The translations under genes and the position numbers were made by a program. This document shows, in pieces, positions 7,038 to 64,000 of a stretch of 64,000 nt of DNA (positions are counted from its first letter, which is position 1; every line of letters starts with the position of its first letter). Location of the stretch: the NCBI GenBank assembly GCA_013416795.1, contig RQSC01000025.1:62001-126000 (forward strand). Direction: 5' to 3'. Origin of the DNA: Prasinococcaceae sp. CCMP 1430 (Eukaryota > Plantae > Prasinodermophyta). The notes beneath the pieces were generated by a model. It did no database searches. It was not told where the DNA came from and saw only the letters and a program-made list of their open reading frames with translations.

Positions 7038-7426
7038 GACCTGCTTGAGCTGGCCCTCGGCCGCGGCGAGTGCTGGGCGAACGCGTGCCCGAGCTGCCGC
7101 CCGTCGCCGAGCGACGTCATGACGCGGGTGCGCGGCCGGCCCTGGCCACTCGCAGCTGCAGCTCCCTTATCACCTCCTCCTCCCTCCACCTCTTCACCAA
7201 GGAGGCCTTCGACGGCCCCACCCCCACCCGCCCACGGCCCCGCGCGCGCCCCGCCGCGGCCGCGCCGCTCTGTGGCCGCGCCGCACGCGCGCTCCTTTTC
7301 CTTCTGCTCTGCATACTCTTGCCGCCCGCCGCATGCCACTTGGCGCACCCGCGCCGCCGCGCGCGGGCGCCGCGCGGTGCCACTTGGGGAACCGCACGCG
7401 CGTGCCACCACCAGCATGTCCTGTAC

Positions 7427-7470
7427 TTAGGGTTTAGATTTTAGGGTAATGTTGCATATCTAGGGTTTAA
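7427..7470 (-). promoter_or_regulatory. Cluster of telo-box-like TAGGGT(TT) motifs in the divergent ankyrin-CDT2 spacer
   Basis: ttagggtttagattttagggtaatgttgcatatctagggtttaa contains three TAGGGT cores in an AT-rich island. Confidence 0.55.
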
Positions 7471-8176
7471 TATCATAATCAGAATGCACGATGGTACAGC
7501 GCCTTCCTCTGCGGTGGCGTGCCTCGATTCGTAGGTGTGCATTTCATCCTTTTTTTCCCTCCTGGCTTTTCCAGTTTCCGCGCCCTTTGTTTCTTTCCTT
7601 TCCTTTTTCCTTTTTTTTTTCCGGGCGCGTTCCCGTTTTCCCGCCGCGGGCGCGGTTCGAAAGCACGAAAGCGCGCGCGGGCGGAGCGAAAGCGAAAGCG
7701 AAAGCGAAAGCGCGCGCGCGTGCCGGGAAAGAAGGCCGGCGAGGGGCGGCGCGCGGCGGCGGCGGGGCGCGCGGGAGCGGCGGCGGCGCGCGCCCGGCGC
7801 TCTCCCAGCACTCGCGCGCGCTTTCGCGCGAGCGCGGCAGGGCGGCTGCGGACGCGCGGCGAGGTGGTGTGGTGTGGGGTGGGGTGGAGGGAGGTCGGGG
7901 TAGGGGGGTGAGAAATTGGCCGGGGCGAGTGAGGGCAGGAGAGGGTGGGAGTGGGGTGGGTAGCGCATCCCGTGGGCGCAGGCGTGTGACTACCGCGCTG
8001 CCCCTTCGCCGACTCGGCCTCTGCGCCTCTTCCCCGCAATCCCCCCCCCCCCCCCCCCCCCCCCACCCCCCACCCAAGCCAACCCGAGACCCGCGCAGCG
8101 GTAGGTCCGGGAGGGGGCTGGCGGCGACCGTGCGCTCTCGCGGTGAGCTCACCGCGCAAACACATCCTCCATCGAA

Positions 8177-17173: not shown

Positions 17174-17734
17174 CGCCGCCGCCCAGGAGGAGCCTCGCAC
17201 CGCCCAATCCTCAGCGGCGCGCACCGCACGCGAGTCGCCCCCTTCCCCACCCCCAGCGGGCGCGCGCCCCACCACCGCTGCGCCGCCGTCGCTCGGCCCG
17301 CGCGCTTTCCGAAATCATAGCTCCGTAAAACGCTCAATTGTCCGGCGGCACACGACCGCGGCGCGGAACCGCGGATACCGCGCGCCGGAATGGCAACCGG
17401 CGGGGAAAAAGGCGCGGGGCAGTTACGAAGCCGAGTGGATTGGGTTGGGGTTGCACAGGATTTAGGATATGTCAATGAAATAGGGTTCATAGACAATAAT
17501 AATTTAGGGGCGCGTTCCGCATTTTTGGAATGTTGAAAAGCACTCTTTTGAAAGCGACGGTAAATGGTTCGCGTGGGGCTTTGGCCGTAATTGTGAGACG
17601 TGACCAAATGCATGCAGTGGCGGGGCGGAGTGCGGGGCCACACTGCGAGCGACGCGCCCGCGCAGCGCCCGCCCCCAACCCCAAACCACCACCCCCGCGA
17701 GCGCGCGTCCGCTGCAGGGCAGGGATCGCCAGCC

Positions 17735-25585: not shown

Positions 25586-26186
25586 TTCTCACTACAGTGA
25601 AATAATTACATTCAGATGATATGAACAAATAAAGTGGTCAAAACGTCATTATTGGGTTCTGCGTGGATGTTGATAATAGTACGAGTGGTTCCACTGAGGA
25701 GAAACGTCAAAGCGAATGGCGCTCGCCCGGCGGGCGGGCGCCCCGCGCGCGCGCGAAAAGGTCACCTGCGAACCAAAAGCGGGGGAAAAAAAAGGGGGGG
25801 GGCTGCTCTGCCGCATGGGCGGCAACGCGCACTTTTTTGCAATTGAATTTGATGAGACCCAAAGCAATGAGGAGTGACCTATCGAGGGCGCTCCTCGTGC
25901 GCTTCAGAGGCAAGCAGGAGTGACGTGCCGAGGTCAAAGTGCATGTCGCTCAAGCCGGGACGGGCGGGCGGCGCGATATGCGGTGCGGGCTGACGCGCCT
26001 TTTTTCTTTTTCTTTTTGTGTGCGCGGTGTCGGCCGCGCCCGTGCGGAGGCGTGCCATCAGACGGCACACCTCTTTCTTTTTCTTTTTCTTTTCTTTTTT
26101 CTTTTTCTTTTTCTTTTTCTTCGGCCGGTGTTTGATTTGGCCGCGACTGCGCCTTTTTCCCCTGTTTTTTTTTCTCCAGAGAGAGA

Positions 26187-32590: not shown

Positions 32591-33247
32591 CCTGGCGGGC
32601 GCACACAAGGCCACGTCTCCCCGTCCGGGCTGCACCGGCATGCACGCTCTTCTTCGCCTCACTTTGGGTTTACGTTTACAACTGCCATTACCATCAGTAC
32701 AACCGCCCGTATCGACCCCCAACCCCAACTGGAACGCATATGACGAAGGCCAACCAACCAACCATTAACACCAACAACACCAACAACACACAGCAACACA
32801 CAACAACAAGCACGGCGAAGAAGGCGTCGCGTCCCTCGCCAGGCGGATGTACGCCCGCCTCCGTGCGCCTCCGCCGCGGCGCGCCCGGCGCGCGGGCGCG
32901 CATTTTTTTTGGATGTGTGCGTCGGTGAGACGCCCGGGGGCGGGCGAGGGAACGGGTGGCCGCGGATTTGGCGCGGGCGCGGCGGCGGCTGCCGCCGGCC
33001 GCGCGGTGGACCGTTGAGTTTGGGTTAGAATCAAAAAGGGTTTGAAAGTTGGGTCAATTGAGGTGAAATTGTTGGTGGATTCGTGTGGGTGACTGCGGTG
33101 GGGTTTGGGTTGGTGCGGGCTCGCCAGGCTCCAGAAGCCGCGCTCGCACACAGCTGCGCCGGGTGCCACAGCGCGCGCGCGCTGACCGCTCCCCCCCCCC
33201 GGCTCTTTCTTTCCCCTCCCCCTCGCGCCTCCGACGCGCGCGTGGAG

Positions 33248-36412: not shown

Positions 36413-38081
36413 ATGAACCCTACGCAGATACTAACCTTTAAAAAGGTCTGCTGTACTGTAAAACCTCAACCCTCGCGGCGCTCGCGGTGGCACAGCCGCC
36501 GTGGGCGGGGGCTTGCTGCCGCGCCCGCCACAGGGCGCACGCGCGGCGCGGGGCTGGCCGACCCGCGCCCCCCGCCTGCGTCCGCGCCGTGTCGTTCCTG
36601 TGCGCCGCGTGCGACGCGGCGCCGCGCGCAGGAGGCGTCGGCGGTGCGCGCAGTGCAGCACCTCACGGCGCTCATCCGCAACAGCTCGGAGGGCACACTC
36701 ATGGGACTCGAGCGCGAGCTCACGCAGGCACGTGTCCGAGCGGCGCGCCTTCTCTCCTTCGCTCGCCCCCTCCCCCTCGTGCAACCGCACACATGCCGCC
36801 TCTCCTCTTTCGTGGTCGTGTCGCATGACCGACCGGGCCCCAGCGCAGTCCCGAATCTGCTACGTGCGATCGCTGACCCGGCGCGTGCGACCACGCGCTC
36901 TTCAGGGCGCCGAGGCGCTGAAGCGCGCCAATCCGGCCCTCGCTGTGGGGCTGGGCGCGGCATGCGACCTCTTCATGCGCTACGTCACGCGGACGAGCGC
37001 GCTCGAATCGGGGGATTTCAGCACTTGCAAGGTGCGCGTGCGCCTTACGCGCCTCGGACCTCACACCCTCGTACCCACGCACTTGCACGCCTGAGCGTAT
37101 GTGCCCGCGCCCGCGCGCGGGCTGACGCGGCGCTGCGTTGCGGTCTGCGGCCCCCGCGCGCGTAGCTGCGCCTCATCGAGCGTGGCGAGGCGTTCGCGCA
37201 GACTTCGTCGGCTGCGCGCCAGAAGATCGCTGCGATGGGCACCAAGCTGCTCAGGGACAGCACGACCGTGCTCATCCACGGCTTCTCGCGCTGCGTGCTC
37301 GCCGTGCTATACGAGGCCGCCAAGGCGGGGCGGAACTTCTCCGTCGTCGTCACCGAGGGGCGACCCGACGCGCAGGGGCTTGCAGCGGCGCAGGCACTCC
37401 GGCAGGTAGGTGTGCGCGGACGCGGGCCAGCGCGCGGGCCAGCGTGCAGGCAACTTCTCGCCCCTCGTCCCCATCCGCATTTCCGCCCCCCCCCCCCCGT
37501 TTCCCCCCGTACACACACGCGCGCAGTCACTCGTGCCCATCCCATCCATGCGGTTGCTGACGGGCCGGCGTGTCGCCTGGCGCTTTAGGCGGGCGTGCCA
37601 GTGACCATCTGCCTGGACGCGGCGGCGGCGTACGTGATGGAGCGCGTGGACATCGTGCTGGTGGGCGCCGAGGGCGTGGTGGAGAATGGGGGGATCGTCA
37701 ACAAGCTCGGCACGTACCAGCTTGCGCTGGCAGCCAAGGCGCTGGGCAAGCCCGTGTACGTCGCCGCGGAGTCGTTCAAGATGGTGCGGCTGTACCCGCT
37801 CAACCAGCAGGACCTGCCAGAGGCGGAGCAGCCGGTGGACTTTGGGCGAGCGCTCCCTGCGGAGGTGCGTGCCACCTGTACAGCGCGAGCGTATGCGCGC
37901 GGCGCTGCCGGCTCATGTGGTGCTGACCGGCGCGATCCGCCCCGCGCGTGCACAGACGAGGATCCTCAATCCAATCAGGGACTACACACCACCCGAGCTG
38001 CTCACGCTGCTGGTGACCGATCTAGGGCTGCTTACGCCCTCCGCGGTATCGGACATGCTCATCACGCTGCACACGCGGTGA
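36413..38081 (+). CDS. EIF2B1: Translation initiation factor eIF2B alpha subunit; multi-exon
   Basis: Exons 36632-36727, 36906-37030, 37166-37405, 37589-37864 and 37956-38081, with a possible first exon 36413-36445. Motifs [55 protein letters not shown] and RDYTPP...TDLG..TPSAVSD. Confidence 0.88.
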
Positions 38082-46083: not shown

Positions 46084-46441
46084 CCTTACTCGCTACGGCC
46101 TCGCGATGGCTCGCAAGCCGCCCGCCCGCCGCCACGCGGCCCCGGTCGCCGCGGGCGGTTCCCTGCTCGGAGTCCACTAACAGCCGGGCCGCGCTGCGCG
46201 CGCCAAACAGCCGTCGGCGGCCCGCGGGCAAACAGTCGGCGGCCTGTGGCTCCCACCCTCCGCTCGCTCCGCAACGCGGGCGCGCCGGCCGCGCGCAGGC
46301 GCGATCGAATGTCGCCGCGCGAAAAATGGACGGCCGCGGTCGCCCGGCCGGCGGCCGCATCGAAACGCAAGGGAAGCTTTTTTTCTTTTTCCCCCTTTTC
46401 ATAAAAATCCAAGTCCTCCTCGGTGGTGGTGGCTGAGGACC

Positions 46442-46677
46442 TACCGTCAGATGGTACCGTACCATCACGATACCATGATGGTACATGTCGCTCAAACTCA
46501 AGCAACGTCACGTCTTCTTTGTTGGGGCCTCGATGCCGCCCGATGGCGATGGTCAGTCAACCCCAGCCCATCGGAGGCATACAGTACCATCATCGTACCA
46601 TCATGATGGTACAGTACCATCATGACGGTACGATCAGTGGTACCATCAGATGGTATGCGCCTGGGTGCCAGATGGCA
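46442..46677. repeat. Cluster A of palindromic TACCATC(W)GATGGTA units
   Basis: taccgtcagatggta 46442-46456; GTACCATCATGATGGTAC 46595-46612 (perfect palindrome); GTACCATCATGACGGTAC 46614-46631; TACCATCAGATGGTA 46641-46655; plus half-sites. Confidence 0.8.
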
Positions 46678-52870: not shown

Positions 52871-53013
52871 GGCGACCACAGTCGACGAGTGAGGCACCAA
52901 CACGAAGTAATAAGCGAGTACACTGTACATGTATATATATATGGTCGCGACGCGTGCGGGCGCGAGCAACCCCCTTTTCACTCCTCTCTGGCTGGCGCGG
53001 CGCCACTGCTACG

Positions 53014-55975: not shown

Positions 55976-56234
55976 CTAGAGTAGCCCCAGCGCCGCGTAT
56001 GAGCAATGTGGTAGCTGGTCTCTGAGCGGTGCCGCGCCGGCGCGGCGCGGCGCCGCGCGAAAGCCTTTCCCTGTCCCGCTCGCCTGCGGGCTGCCACAGC
56101 GTGCGTGGGCGCGTGGGCCCTCCGGCGGCGCGACCCCGCGCCGCGGCGCCGCGCGCGCGCCCTGTGGCGCGCACTTCTCGCGCGATCGGCGGAGCGCGCG
56201 GAAAAAAAAAACATTGTGTATTGGGGTTTGATAG

Positions 56235-56248
56235 TTTAGGGTTTAAGT
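56235..56248 (-). promoter_or_regulatory. Telo-box-like motif (TTTAGGGTTTA) in the divergent ABCB-WD40 spacer
   Basis: tagtttagggtttaag in an AT-rich island. Confidence 0.5.
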
Positions 56249-56480
56249 CAACGCGTTGTGGGCAGGGGCGCGCTCGGCTTGTGTACAGGGTGCCACAGCG
56301 CCCGCCCGCCCGCCCGGGAGGGGGTGTTCCGGATCGCGCACCCGTCTTTCCCGCGCCTGTGCCGTGTGGGCCGGTGAGAAAACAAAGGAAATGTGCGCAA
56401 AAAGCAACACCATCCGACCCTCAAGATAATGGTGTCATTTACCCACGGGCGATCAATTACATGAGGCTTGCCTCGCCACA

Positions 56481-56705
56481 TACAATCTGATGGTACTGTA
56501 CAGCACCAGTTGGAATCATACGATGGCAAGTTTAACGCCCAGCAAATGCTTCGCAAAGTTTTCACCCTGGAGAGAAGCGGGCGCGGGGCGCGAGCGCGAA
56601 GCCCCGCCGCGGACCCAGGAATCGCACGGACGCGGAGCGCTGTGGAGGTGGGCTTCCCGAACGCATCTGCCATCCGATGGTACTGTACTGTGCCATCGAT
56701 GGTAC
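56481..56705. repeat. Cluster B of the TACCATC(W)GATGGTA palindrome family
   Basis: tacaatctgatggtactgtac (56481), tgccatccgatggtactgtac (56668), tgccatcgatggtac (56691). Confidence 0.7.
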
Positions 56706-56879: not shown

Positions 56880-58223
56880 GTGACAGCGGGGCTTTTTTGT
56901 GCGCGCGCGGCCGCGCGGCCGCGCGGCGGCGGCGGTGGCGGCGCCAGTGGCGCCACTGCGCGTGCAGCTGGCGGCCAAGGACAGGTGACCACTGCGCGCG
57001 CGCGGGGAGGCCCAGGACAGGCGATGGACTTAGCGCGCATGATGTGCGTGTGGGGTGCGCCGACCGACGAGGCGGTGCACGTGCTCGAGGGGCACGAGGA
57101 TACTGTGTTTTCGGTGTGCTGGAGCCCGGACGGCTCGCGCCTGGCCTCGGCGAGCTTCGACAGGACGGTGCGCGTGTGGGTCGCGGGGGACGCGTCGACC
57201 GGCACGGCGGTGCATGTGCTCGAGGGCACAGTTTTTGTGCGCTCACTGTGCTGGGGCCCGGACGGCTCGCGCCTTGCGGCGAGCGACGACAAGACGGTGC
57301 GCGTGTGGGACGCGTCGACCGGCGAGGCGGTGCACGTGCTCGAGGGACACGAGCATGTCGTGCGCTCGATGTGCTGGAGTCCGGACGGCTCGCGCCTGGC
57401 GTCGGCGAGCGACGATAAGACGGTGCGCATGTGGGACGCGTCGACCGGCGAGGCGGTGCGCGTGCTTGAGGGACACAGCCACTGCATGTACTCACTGTGC
57501 TGGAGTCCGGACGGCTCGCGCCTGGCGTCGGCGAGCGCCAACAAGACTGTGCGCGTGTGGGACGCGTCGACAGGCGAGGCGGTGCGCGTGCTCGAGGGAC
57601 ACGAGGATACTGTGACTTCGGTGTGCTGGAGCCCAGACGGCTCGCGCCTGGCGTCGGCGGGTTGGGACAACACGGTGCGCGTGTGGGACGCGTCGACCGG
57701 CAAGGCGGTGCACGTGCTCGAGGGACACAGACAATGGGTGCACTCGGTGTGCTGGAGCCCGGACGGCTCGCGCCTGGCGTCGGCGAGCGACGACAGGACG
57801 ATGCGCGTGTGGGACGCGTCGACCGGCGAGGCAGTGCACGCGTTCCAGGGATATAGGGATTGTGTGGGTTCACCGTGTTGGAGCCCGGACGGCTCGCGCC
57901 TGGCGTCGGCGAGCGACGACAAGACTGTGCGCGTGTGGGACGCGTCGACAGGCGACGCGTTGCACGTGCTCGTGGGACACGAGGATACTGTGACTTCGGT
58001 GTGCTGGAGCCCCGACGGCTCGCGCCTGGCGTCGGCGAGCAGAGACTACACGGTGCGCGTGTGGAGATTCACTTTAGGACTACCTGACATTTACAAGCGC
58101 TTGCGCTCGCGCGAAGTCCAGCGTCGATCCACTCGAGCGCACTGGAGCACTCAATCGGCGCGCGCACGCGCTTCGAGGCGAGAGCTCGCGCGCGGCAATG
58201 GCAGCAGCTCCGCTCCTCCGTAA
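56880..58223 (+). CDS. WD40 protein made of 8 high-identity tandem repeats (126-bp / 42-aa unit), HET-E-like; no NTPase domain seen
   Basis: Repeats of VWDASTGEAVHVLEGHxxxVxSxCWSPDGSRLASASxDxTVR between about 57047 and 58064. The real start may be the ATG near 57023. Confidence 0.75.
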   Translation: MTAGLFCARAAARPRGGGGGGASGATARAAGGQGQVTTARARGGPGQAMDLARMMCVWGAPTDEAVHVLEGHEDTVFSVCWSPDGSRLASASFDRTVRVWVAGDASTGTAVHVLEGTVFVRSLCWGPDGSRLAASDDKTVRVWDASTGEAVHVLEGHEHVVRSMCWSPDGSRLASASDDKTVRMWDASTGEAVRVLEGHSHCMYSLCWSPDGSRLASASANKTVRVWDASTGEAVRVLEGHEDTVTSVCWSPDGSRLASAGWDNTVRVWDASTGKAVHVLEGHRQWVHSVCWSPDGSRLASASDDRTMRVWDASTGEAVHAFQGYRDCVGSPCWSPDGSRLASASDDKTVRVWDASTGDALHVLVGHEDTVTSVCWSPDGSRLASASRDYTVRVWRFTLGLPDIYKRLRSREVQRRSTRAHWSTQSARARASRRELARGNGSSSAPP

Positions 58224-61091: not shown

Positions 61092-61200
61092 NNNNNNNNN
61101 NNNNNNNNNNNNNNNNNNNNNNNNNNNNNNNNNNNNNNNNNNNNNNNNNNNNNNNNNNNNNNNNNNNNNNNNNNNNNNNNNNNNNNNNNNNNNNNNNNNN
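61092..61200. other. Assembly gap (N run)
   Basis: Run of n characters. Confidence 0.99.
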
Positions 61201-61342
61201 TGTGCCCGCGCCCGTGCCCGTGCCCGTGCCCGTGCCGGCGGCGGCGGCGGCGGCCTCCTTCGAACGCGCGCGGCTGCGACGGTCGAAGAAACCCCGGTTT
61301 CGAGCGCATGCGTTTTCAACTGCAATTCGATCGGTTGGTGTG

Positions 61343-61375
61343 TACCATCTGATGGTAAAGTACCATCAGATGGTA
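61343..61375. repeat. Cluster C: two tandem 15-bp palindromes, TACCATCTGATGGTA and TACCATCAGATGGTA
   Basis: Read directly at 61343-61357 and 61361-61375 (period 18 bp) in the divergent gyrA-ABCF spacer. Confidence 0.85.
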
Positions 61376-61652
61376 GTTGGTCATGACGTGTGTGTGTGCT
61401 CCATACGCACAAGGTCCCGTCGCGTTCAAATTGACGTACGCAGGACGAACGCGTTCGCCGGTTTCGGTTTCGCGCGAAACGCCCGATCATGCGACGATCC
61501 GGACCGAGGCTGGGTTGCAGAGCTGGCCGGCGGCGGCTGCTGCGATGCAGGTGTGGCGCGGCGGGGCCGGCGCGCCACACGGGGCGGCCTCGGCCCCTCT
61601 CCCCCCCCGTTTCCCCTTCGCGCCCGGCGCCCCCTCGGCGGGGTCGTTGGCC

Positions 61653-63931: not shown

Positions 63932-63964
63932 CCGATGGTACGTACTGTGTATCATCTGATGTTA
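63932..63964. repeat. Degenerate cluster D of the GATGGTA palindrome family
   Basis: ccgatggtacgtactgtgtatcatctgatgtta, similar to cluster B (gatggtactgtactgtgccatcgatggta). Confidence 0.55.
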
Positions 63965-64000
63965 CTACATCGCCGCGCCTGCAATAAACCCTGTATACGA

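Follow-up and report, generated by a model that had tools for sequence, protein, structure and literature searches.

Palindromic arrays in the promoter islands of a Prasinoderma coloniale genomic window look like stacked scars of TA-targeting transposons

A palindromic motif built from CCATC and GATGG half-sites recurs in the spacers of a 64,000-nt stretch of DNA, the whole of which we refer to as the window, and its frequency is far above chance. We propose, with a probability of roughly 55%, that the arrays formed by this motif, including their palindromic cores, are stacked excision scars of cut-and-paste transposons of the Tc1/mariner type, which target TA dinucleotides. The palindromes look mainly like transposon scars rather than a new regulatory system. 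No regulatory role is claimed for the arrays; the scars may alter promoter spacing.

The G+C content of the window is 68–70% throughout, and its genes are long and intron-poor, with a very high third-position GC. Because the C-terminal 451 residues of its gyrA product are 100% identical to PRCOL_00001980 of Prasinoderma coloniale (EukProt EP00793), the window is assigned to this species on sequence grounds. JGI sample 3300016765 contains two transcript contigs with 100% matches to the window. The published P. coloniale genome comprises 25.3 Mb with 69.8% GC, 7,139 genes and 6.5% repeats (PMC7455551). Gene identities around the arrays were taken from Pfam, and all spacer counts given below rest on a rough gene map that divides the window into ~13.2 kb of spacers and 50.8 kb of other DNA.

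Copies of the palindromic motif and their positions

The 8-mer GATGGTAC occurs in 15 exact copies, compared with 0.51 expected in the window. All 15 are located inside the ~13.2 kb of spacer DNA, and none is found in the other 50.8 kb. GATGGTA gives 21 matches against 1.33 expected, and TACCATCWGATGGTA, with at most one mismatch, gives five against 0.00. These counts confirm the presence of the family at four arrays (A to D) and at a half-site near 7490, as described in the earlier note, and they agree with its remark that no full copy was seen in coding DNA.

All features are given without strand. Array A, located between the genes for acetyl-CoA carboxylase (ACC, − strand) and a subtilase (+ strand), consists of two blocks. 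The left block (46442–46483) is made of TA-bounded modules, namely a core, CCG, a half-core and a short core, while the right block (46580–46655) contains three cores and degenerate modules with TA-CAG-TA joints. The DNA between them (46484–46579), reported as ~100 nt of unrelated sequence, is ~95 nt long, unique, and nearly invariant in three haplotypes. Array B lies between an ABCB transporter gene (−) and a WD40 gene (+) and is formed by B1 (56481–56526; motif site at 56481–56500), with one degenerate core, TA-CTG-TA and TA-CGATGG, and B2 (56669–56705), with two cores joined by TA-CTG-TA-CTG-TG. Array C (61342–61376), between gyrA (−) and ABCF (+), comprises two perfect 15-nt cores that have opposite central bases and are joined by AAG. 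Array D (63932–63968) is degenerate; it consists of a half-core, TA-CG-TA-CTGTG-TA, a degenerate core and C-TA, and lies 156 bp past the ABCF stop codon. The four array-bearing spacers are consecutive, all within 46–64 kb of the window.

Isolated units are also present. The half-site GATGG-TA-CAG (7490–7499) is located in the head-to-head spacer of an ankyrin gene (−) and a WD40/CDT2-like gene (+). A core at 26052–26068, likewise in a head-to-head spacer, has TG/CA at the position of both flanking TAs (GTG/CAC instead of GTA/TAC). The copy TA-CCATCAG-TA (32689–32699) occupies a tandem 5′ spacer and has one tip, and a single TACTGTA (36454–36460) lies in a head-to-head spacer. Outside the palindrome units, comparison of the sites of the window revealed no similarity between them, and no Rfam model was matched at the gathering score anywhere in the window.

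The family had been described as concentrated in head-to-head spacers. Arrays A, B and C and the half-site at 7490 do occupy such spacers, but the association is only a trend: full copies were found in 3/11 divergent, 1/4 tandem 5′ and 0/~10 convergent spacers of our gene map, and at least six further head-to-head spacers of the window contain no copy. For array A, the transcripts define the setting more closely. The ACC mRNA contig extends to window position 46233, followed by 31 nt that are absent from the window, and the subtilase mRNA contig begins at 47038; array A is therefore situated in an untranscribed divergent gap of ~800 bp, at 210–400 bp from both mRNA 5′ ends. Array D differs in being placed just 3′ of a gene.

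The centre of the core is not always a single A or T, as had been proposed, since the gap between CCATC and GATGG is 0, 1 or 2 nt. The preference for A or T does stand: 1-nt gaps are A or T in 7/8 cases and both 2-nt gaps are AT, against a genome of 69% GC. Each core variant reads as a prefix of CCATCA followed by a suffix of TGATGG. The 12-mer corresponds to 6+6 nt, the two 11-mers, with central A or T, to 6+5 and 5+6, the 10-mer to 5+5, and the variant CCATGATGG to 3+6. CCAATGG, CCTGG and CCAGG, found in relatives, combine a shorter prefix and suffix, and the copy at 32689 represents one tip only. Such a series would be expected if an inverted-repeat or foldback element flanked by TA had its two tips trimmed to variable extents.

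Module structure and haplotype variation of the arrays

When every TA-dense run of the window is split at each TA, arrays A–D parse completely into short TA-bounded modules. Every small module in these arrays is bounded by TA, in the manner of the duplicated TA of a Tc1/mariner footprint. Adjacent palindromes meet at the junction G-TA-C(A/T)G-TA-C, and C(A/T)G, more common than any other small module, yields TAC(A/T)GTA. TACWGTA is found five times in the window (0.33 expected), in spacers in 5/5 cases and inside arrays in 4/5, and GTACNGTAC is found four times (0.18 expected). The 18–19-bp period noted earlier in cluster A, and detected here with Tandem Repeats Finder as well, equals a core (11–12 nt) plus TA, CWG and TA. 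The arrays are symmetric around a CWG module, and in array C the two cores with opposite central bases provide arms that are complementary at 15/15 positions.

The canonical excision footprints of the Tc1/mariner transposon Sleeping Beauty are TACAGTA and TACTGTA; they consist of the duplicated TA target and the terminal three bases, with mismatch repair leaving the middle base ambiguous, and footprints of 1–2 bp are also known (PMC6943129). The array junctions TAC(A/T)GTA are identical to this canonical sequence, and the arrays share with these footprints the duplicated TA, the ambiguous middle base of the C(A/T)G insert, the shorter 1–2-nt versions and a gain of 5 bp at a TA between alleles. 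Excision footprints as such are textbook knowledge. The arrays differ from known Tc1/mariner footprints in that many are stacked head to tail, over up to ~75 bp, at promoter islands and in several spacers, in that no footprint type like the long palindromic cores is known, and in that donor elements were not found in the window or the fetched loci.

Variation among relatives was followed in environmental DNA. A 90%-identity cluster of 21 members, drawn from ENA/TARA metagenome assemblies and Logan, includes the subtilase. We compared the syntenic environmental genomic contigs L018–L025 and L036–L039, which are 97–98.5% identical to the window in genes; the comparison of the arrays drew on L018–L022 and L036. 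Three haplotypes could be compared for array A and three for array B. In both arrays, the haplotypes differ from the window almost solely by “x + TA” indels placed at a TA, with x standing for CTG, CAG, C, G, CCAGG or similar. At such places the alleles of the window and the TARA contigs, whose changes are unpolarised, differ by exactly an insert plus TA. An additional CTG-TA is seen at three sites, one of them at 46639, and +C-TA, +G-TA and +CCAGG-TA also occur. In the left block of array A, L021 carries an additional CTG-TA and G-TA. The same haplotype has a 41-nt insert composed of nine TA-bounded modules with internal near-repeats, and one entire 12-nt core is swapped for G-TA-C. The contigs L018, L020 and L022 share an 8-nt indel at 56518 in B1 and an extra CAG-TA at 56701 in B2, and in L036 the CTGTG at 56685 is absent and the core there has perfect TA flanks.

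In L018, ~6 indel events fall within ~0.2 kb of array, compared with ~23 in ~2.6 kb of other spacer, and indels outside the arrays are ordinary GC-rich microsatellite changes. The TA-rich 3′–3′ spacer at 52908–52941, TA-CACTG-TA-CATG-(TA)5, varies among seven haplotypes only in (TA)n length and by point changes. Given that this spacer is without x + TA polymorphism, the arrays are specific indel hot spots, beyond the mere presence of TAs. Several cores are invariant over all haplotypes, with indels restricted to their flanks. At 2–3% divergence, three cores are substituted in L018 and one is lost in L021 (3–4 haplotypes, four sites). Presence or absence between strains had been proposed earlier as a check: no empty site was seen in the relatives, and the array alleles differ by the x + TA indels.

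Proposed excision scars and competing explanations

In the reading that we prefer, cut-and-paste elements of the Tc1/mariner type would insert at TA. In a genome of 69% G+C, TA is rare outside AT-richer promoter islands, so insertions would concentrate and pile up there. Insertion would duplicate the TA, and excision would leave a few terminal element bases between two TAs, so that each cycle would add an “x + TA” module together with a new TA target. Since every cycle would create another target, arrays could grow. The G-TA-C boundary would represent the last base of one scar, the TA, and the first base of the next. The cores, CCATC-(0–2 nt)-GATGG with a length of 10–12 nt, would be a larger module type; they are probably tips left behind by an inverted-repeat or foldback element that was flanked by TA and had the ends CCATCA...TGATGG, and these tips would have been joined after variable trimming. 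Some excision breaks may have been repaired by fold-back copying of an adjacent module, which would generate nested palindromes centred on a CWG scar.

Several observations favour this origin. The 15 exact 8-mer copies fit copying better than convergent binding sites, the clustering of the four consecutive array spacers fits local hopping, and we count in its favour that the distances from arrays to genes are very different, as arrays A and D illustrate. Short perfect TA-flanked palindromes with two symmetric tips and a 0–2-nt centre also resemble foldback or hairpin MITE remnants that have lost their centre; the difference is that no full-length parent element was seen in the window or the fetched loci. 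Similarly, no transposon with CAG... or CCATCA... ends was found in the window or the fetched loci, so we infer the source elements. TA-flanked inverted-end pairs at a threshold of at least 15/20 were absent from the window except for two GC-rich chance pairs, and a search of the window for hairpins and TA-flanked inverted ends recovered only the arrays themselves. The earlier note had called for a search for target-site duplications and for an element flanked by the motif; no TA-flanked inverted-end pair enclosing an interior was found in the window. Its suggestion of non-autonomous transposon termini survives in part: the signature of repeated insertion and excision at TA (TAC(A/T)GTA and the x + TA indels) is there, but no element is in place.

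Other points weigh against scars as the origin of the arrays. Known Tc1/mariner footprints keep 1–4 nt per end, whereas the cores would need 5–6 nt per end or a foldback remnant. The x + TA polymorphisms are unpolarised without an outgroup, and deletions between direct GTAC microhomologies give the same pattern. The modules AAG, CCG, GAC/GTC and CTGTG fit no named tip, and the arrays are hot spots, unlike the TA-rich spacer at 52908–52941. A mutation-accumulation study of this strain recorded only 2 small insertions, with no mention of transposition (PMC11884799), which also counts against a scar origin. Furthermore, a host protein might bind the cores and make their G-TA-C flanks accessible; both the invariance of several cores and the fact that the arrays are hot spots would be compatible with this.

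This last idea leads to the strongest alternative, which we consider possible, if doubtful: the cores, GTACCATC-W-GATGGTAC, would be putative promoter sites of a DNA-binding host protein that acts as a dimer or oligomer, and only the junction modules would be scars, accumulating as the G-TA-C flanks of a bound, nucleosome-free site offer the best TA targets available. The confinement of the copies to spacers, mostly 5′ ones, the position of array A in the untranscribed gap of two divergent mRNA 5′ ends, and the several cores that stay the same in all haplotypes while indels are restricted to their flanks are consistent with such sites, and the arrays behave as if marked, being indel hot spots where the other TA-rich spacer is not. 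However, a gap of 0–2 bp between half-sites is unusual for a dimer; a dimeric factor normally requires fixed half-site spacing. Typical factor sites are shorter and less exact than the invariant half-site of 8–9 nt, and the cores, three of them changed in L018 and one missing in L021, appear to be conserved no better than the neighbouring spacer. In addition, the cores have no fixed position relative to genes over the four sites, the flanked genes share no common functional theme, and the motif is absent from the empty head-to-head spacers counted above. A candidate class of factor exists, as P. coloniale has SBP-box factors that recognise a GTAC core (PMC7455551), and GTAC is present at every unit boundary of the arrays. 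Yet an SBP-box site, for example a Chlamydomonas CRR1 copper-response element (cited in PMC7455551), has one GTAC core between short flanks, whereas the arrays conserve an 8-nt half-site in variably spaced palindromes.

A mixed explanation, which we regard as rather unlikely, holds that cores bound by a host or transposase-derived protein make the adjacent G-TA-C a preferred landing site, so that the arrays act as self-reinforcing “landing pads”. The S. pombe retrotransposon Tf1 integrates at promoters next to Sap1 sites, and its tethering protein is proven. Insertions in P. coloniale would similarly pile up by a short motif in nucleosome-free promoter DNA, but Tf1 is a retrotransposon with a proven tether, whereas both the factor and the tethering in P. 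coloniale are hypothetical. If landing pads did exist, promoter length and spacing would change fast between strains, providing built-in promoter variation in a compact, TA-poor genome.

It is improbable that no transposon was involved and that short GTAC-bearing palindromes are intrinsically unstable, with slippage, template switching and microhomology repair making and removing x + TA and duplicating units. All polymorphic indels are bounded by direct GTAC or TA repeats and could in each case have arisen by deletion or duplication at a microhomology; the 19-bp tandem duplication signal at 46595–46631, the strong hairpin potential of the region and the internal near-repeats in the 41-nt insert of L021 point in the same direction. 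Such instability nevertheless leaves unexplained why C(A/T)G, the canonical footprint, is the 3-nt piece at independent sites, and why the same units occur at unlinked spacers without flanking similarity.

A structural DNA element (cruciform, replication origin or chromatin boundary) has a very low probability as an explanation of the arrays. The right block of array A contains a 43-nt near-perfect palindrome centred on 46613, and its DNA fold energy is −22.9 kcal/mol compared with −9.4 kcal/mol for shuffles (z-score −6.6), but palindromy is an automatic consequence of tandem palindromic units, array length and content vary freely among close haplotypes, and four sites in 18 kb followed by none in 38 kb fit neither origins nor regular boundaries. 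Least probable of all, and largely refuted, is a foldback or MITE-like non-autonomous element still in place, in which the two blocks of array A would be the inverted ends and the other sites would be copies: over 31 nt the blocks show ~81% complementarity, in arms that lie 110 nt apart, but the inverted orientation of the outer units reported earlier is indistinguishable from a direct one in a unit that is itself palindromic, the DNA between the blocks is unique and conserved in relatives, among which no empty site was seen, there is no target duplication around the pair, the two-block layout occurs at no other site, and no whole unit of inverted ends, interior and target-site duplication is repeated elsewhere.

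A literature search returned no description of promoter motifs or transposons of P. coloniale, and the stacking of footprints into dispersed palindromic arrays in promoter islands, variable between wild strains, was not found described. If the arrays are indeed excision scars, the promoter islands of P. coloniale are partly made of them; these scars would create new TA targets and so mark where TA-targeting elements land, and they would alter promoter spacing among wild strains that are 97–98% identical in genes. A conspicuous promoter “motif family” can be a by-product of transposon traffic and not a regulatory code, and searches for motifs in compact GC-rich algal genomes should in practice take this as a warning. 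Ocean metagenome contigs are usable as population data for such tests in an uncultured-scale picoalga.

Further observations around the arrays

Readings of the core as an E-box, a CArG box, an X-box or a LEAFY-like site were rejected, as the conserved part lies outside their cores or the spacing varies. Scanning the sequence collection with a two-unit pattern gave 14 metagenome loci and one viral locus, all low-GC and unrelated, with none from Prasinoderma; most of them represent one phage-like coding stretch. A tandem pair of an 18–19-nt look-alike, TACCATC-AA-GATGGTACC, in non-coding DNA of a metagenome contig with 40% GC (L002:480–530) is probably a coincidence.

In L018 (8047–9008) and L019, a segment of ~950 bp replaces window positions 46372–46452, including the first core of array A, and its right breakpoint is the TGG-TA of the first palindrome. 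The segment carries an ORF of 198 aa (L019:8063–8656, − strand) that belongs to a 14-member 90% cluster from several contigs. This ORF has no match in Pfam or PDB sequences, and a guess that it encodes an AlkB-like oxygenase found no support there. The apparent absence of array A from L036 is explained by a scaffold gap at that place. At 46233–46234, the window lacks ~100 bp that are present in both TARA relatives (L018:7811–7915), the first 31 nt of which are found in the ACC transcript contig of the strain itself (L001:1–31); the assembly has probably undergone a small collapse in the 5′ region of ACC.

Judged against L032:1–462, the N-run at 61092–61200 conceals 5′ coding DNA of gyrA that is very GC-rich and measures at least 460 bp, so that gyrA probably does not start at the ATG at 61309. 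All of the environmental gyrA contigs (10/10) break within the stretch concealed by this run, ahead of array C. The WD40 gene at 57046–58064 contains eight 126-bp repeats of ~80% identity, and the L022 haplotype is without 378 bp, equal to three repeats. All relatives have unrelated GC-rich DNA in place of ~140 bp upstream of ABCB (56157–56296), which include an A10 run and a telobox-like stretch. Telobox-like repeats, TTTAGGG(T)/AAACCCTA, are present in promoter islands at 7424–7477, 17463–17506 and 56219–56245, and they are a different, more conventional plant-type promoter element than the palindromes.
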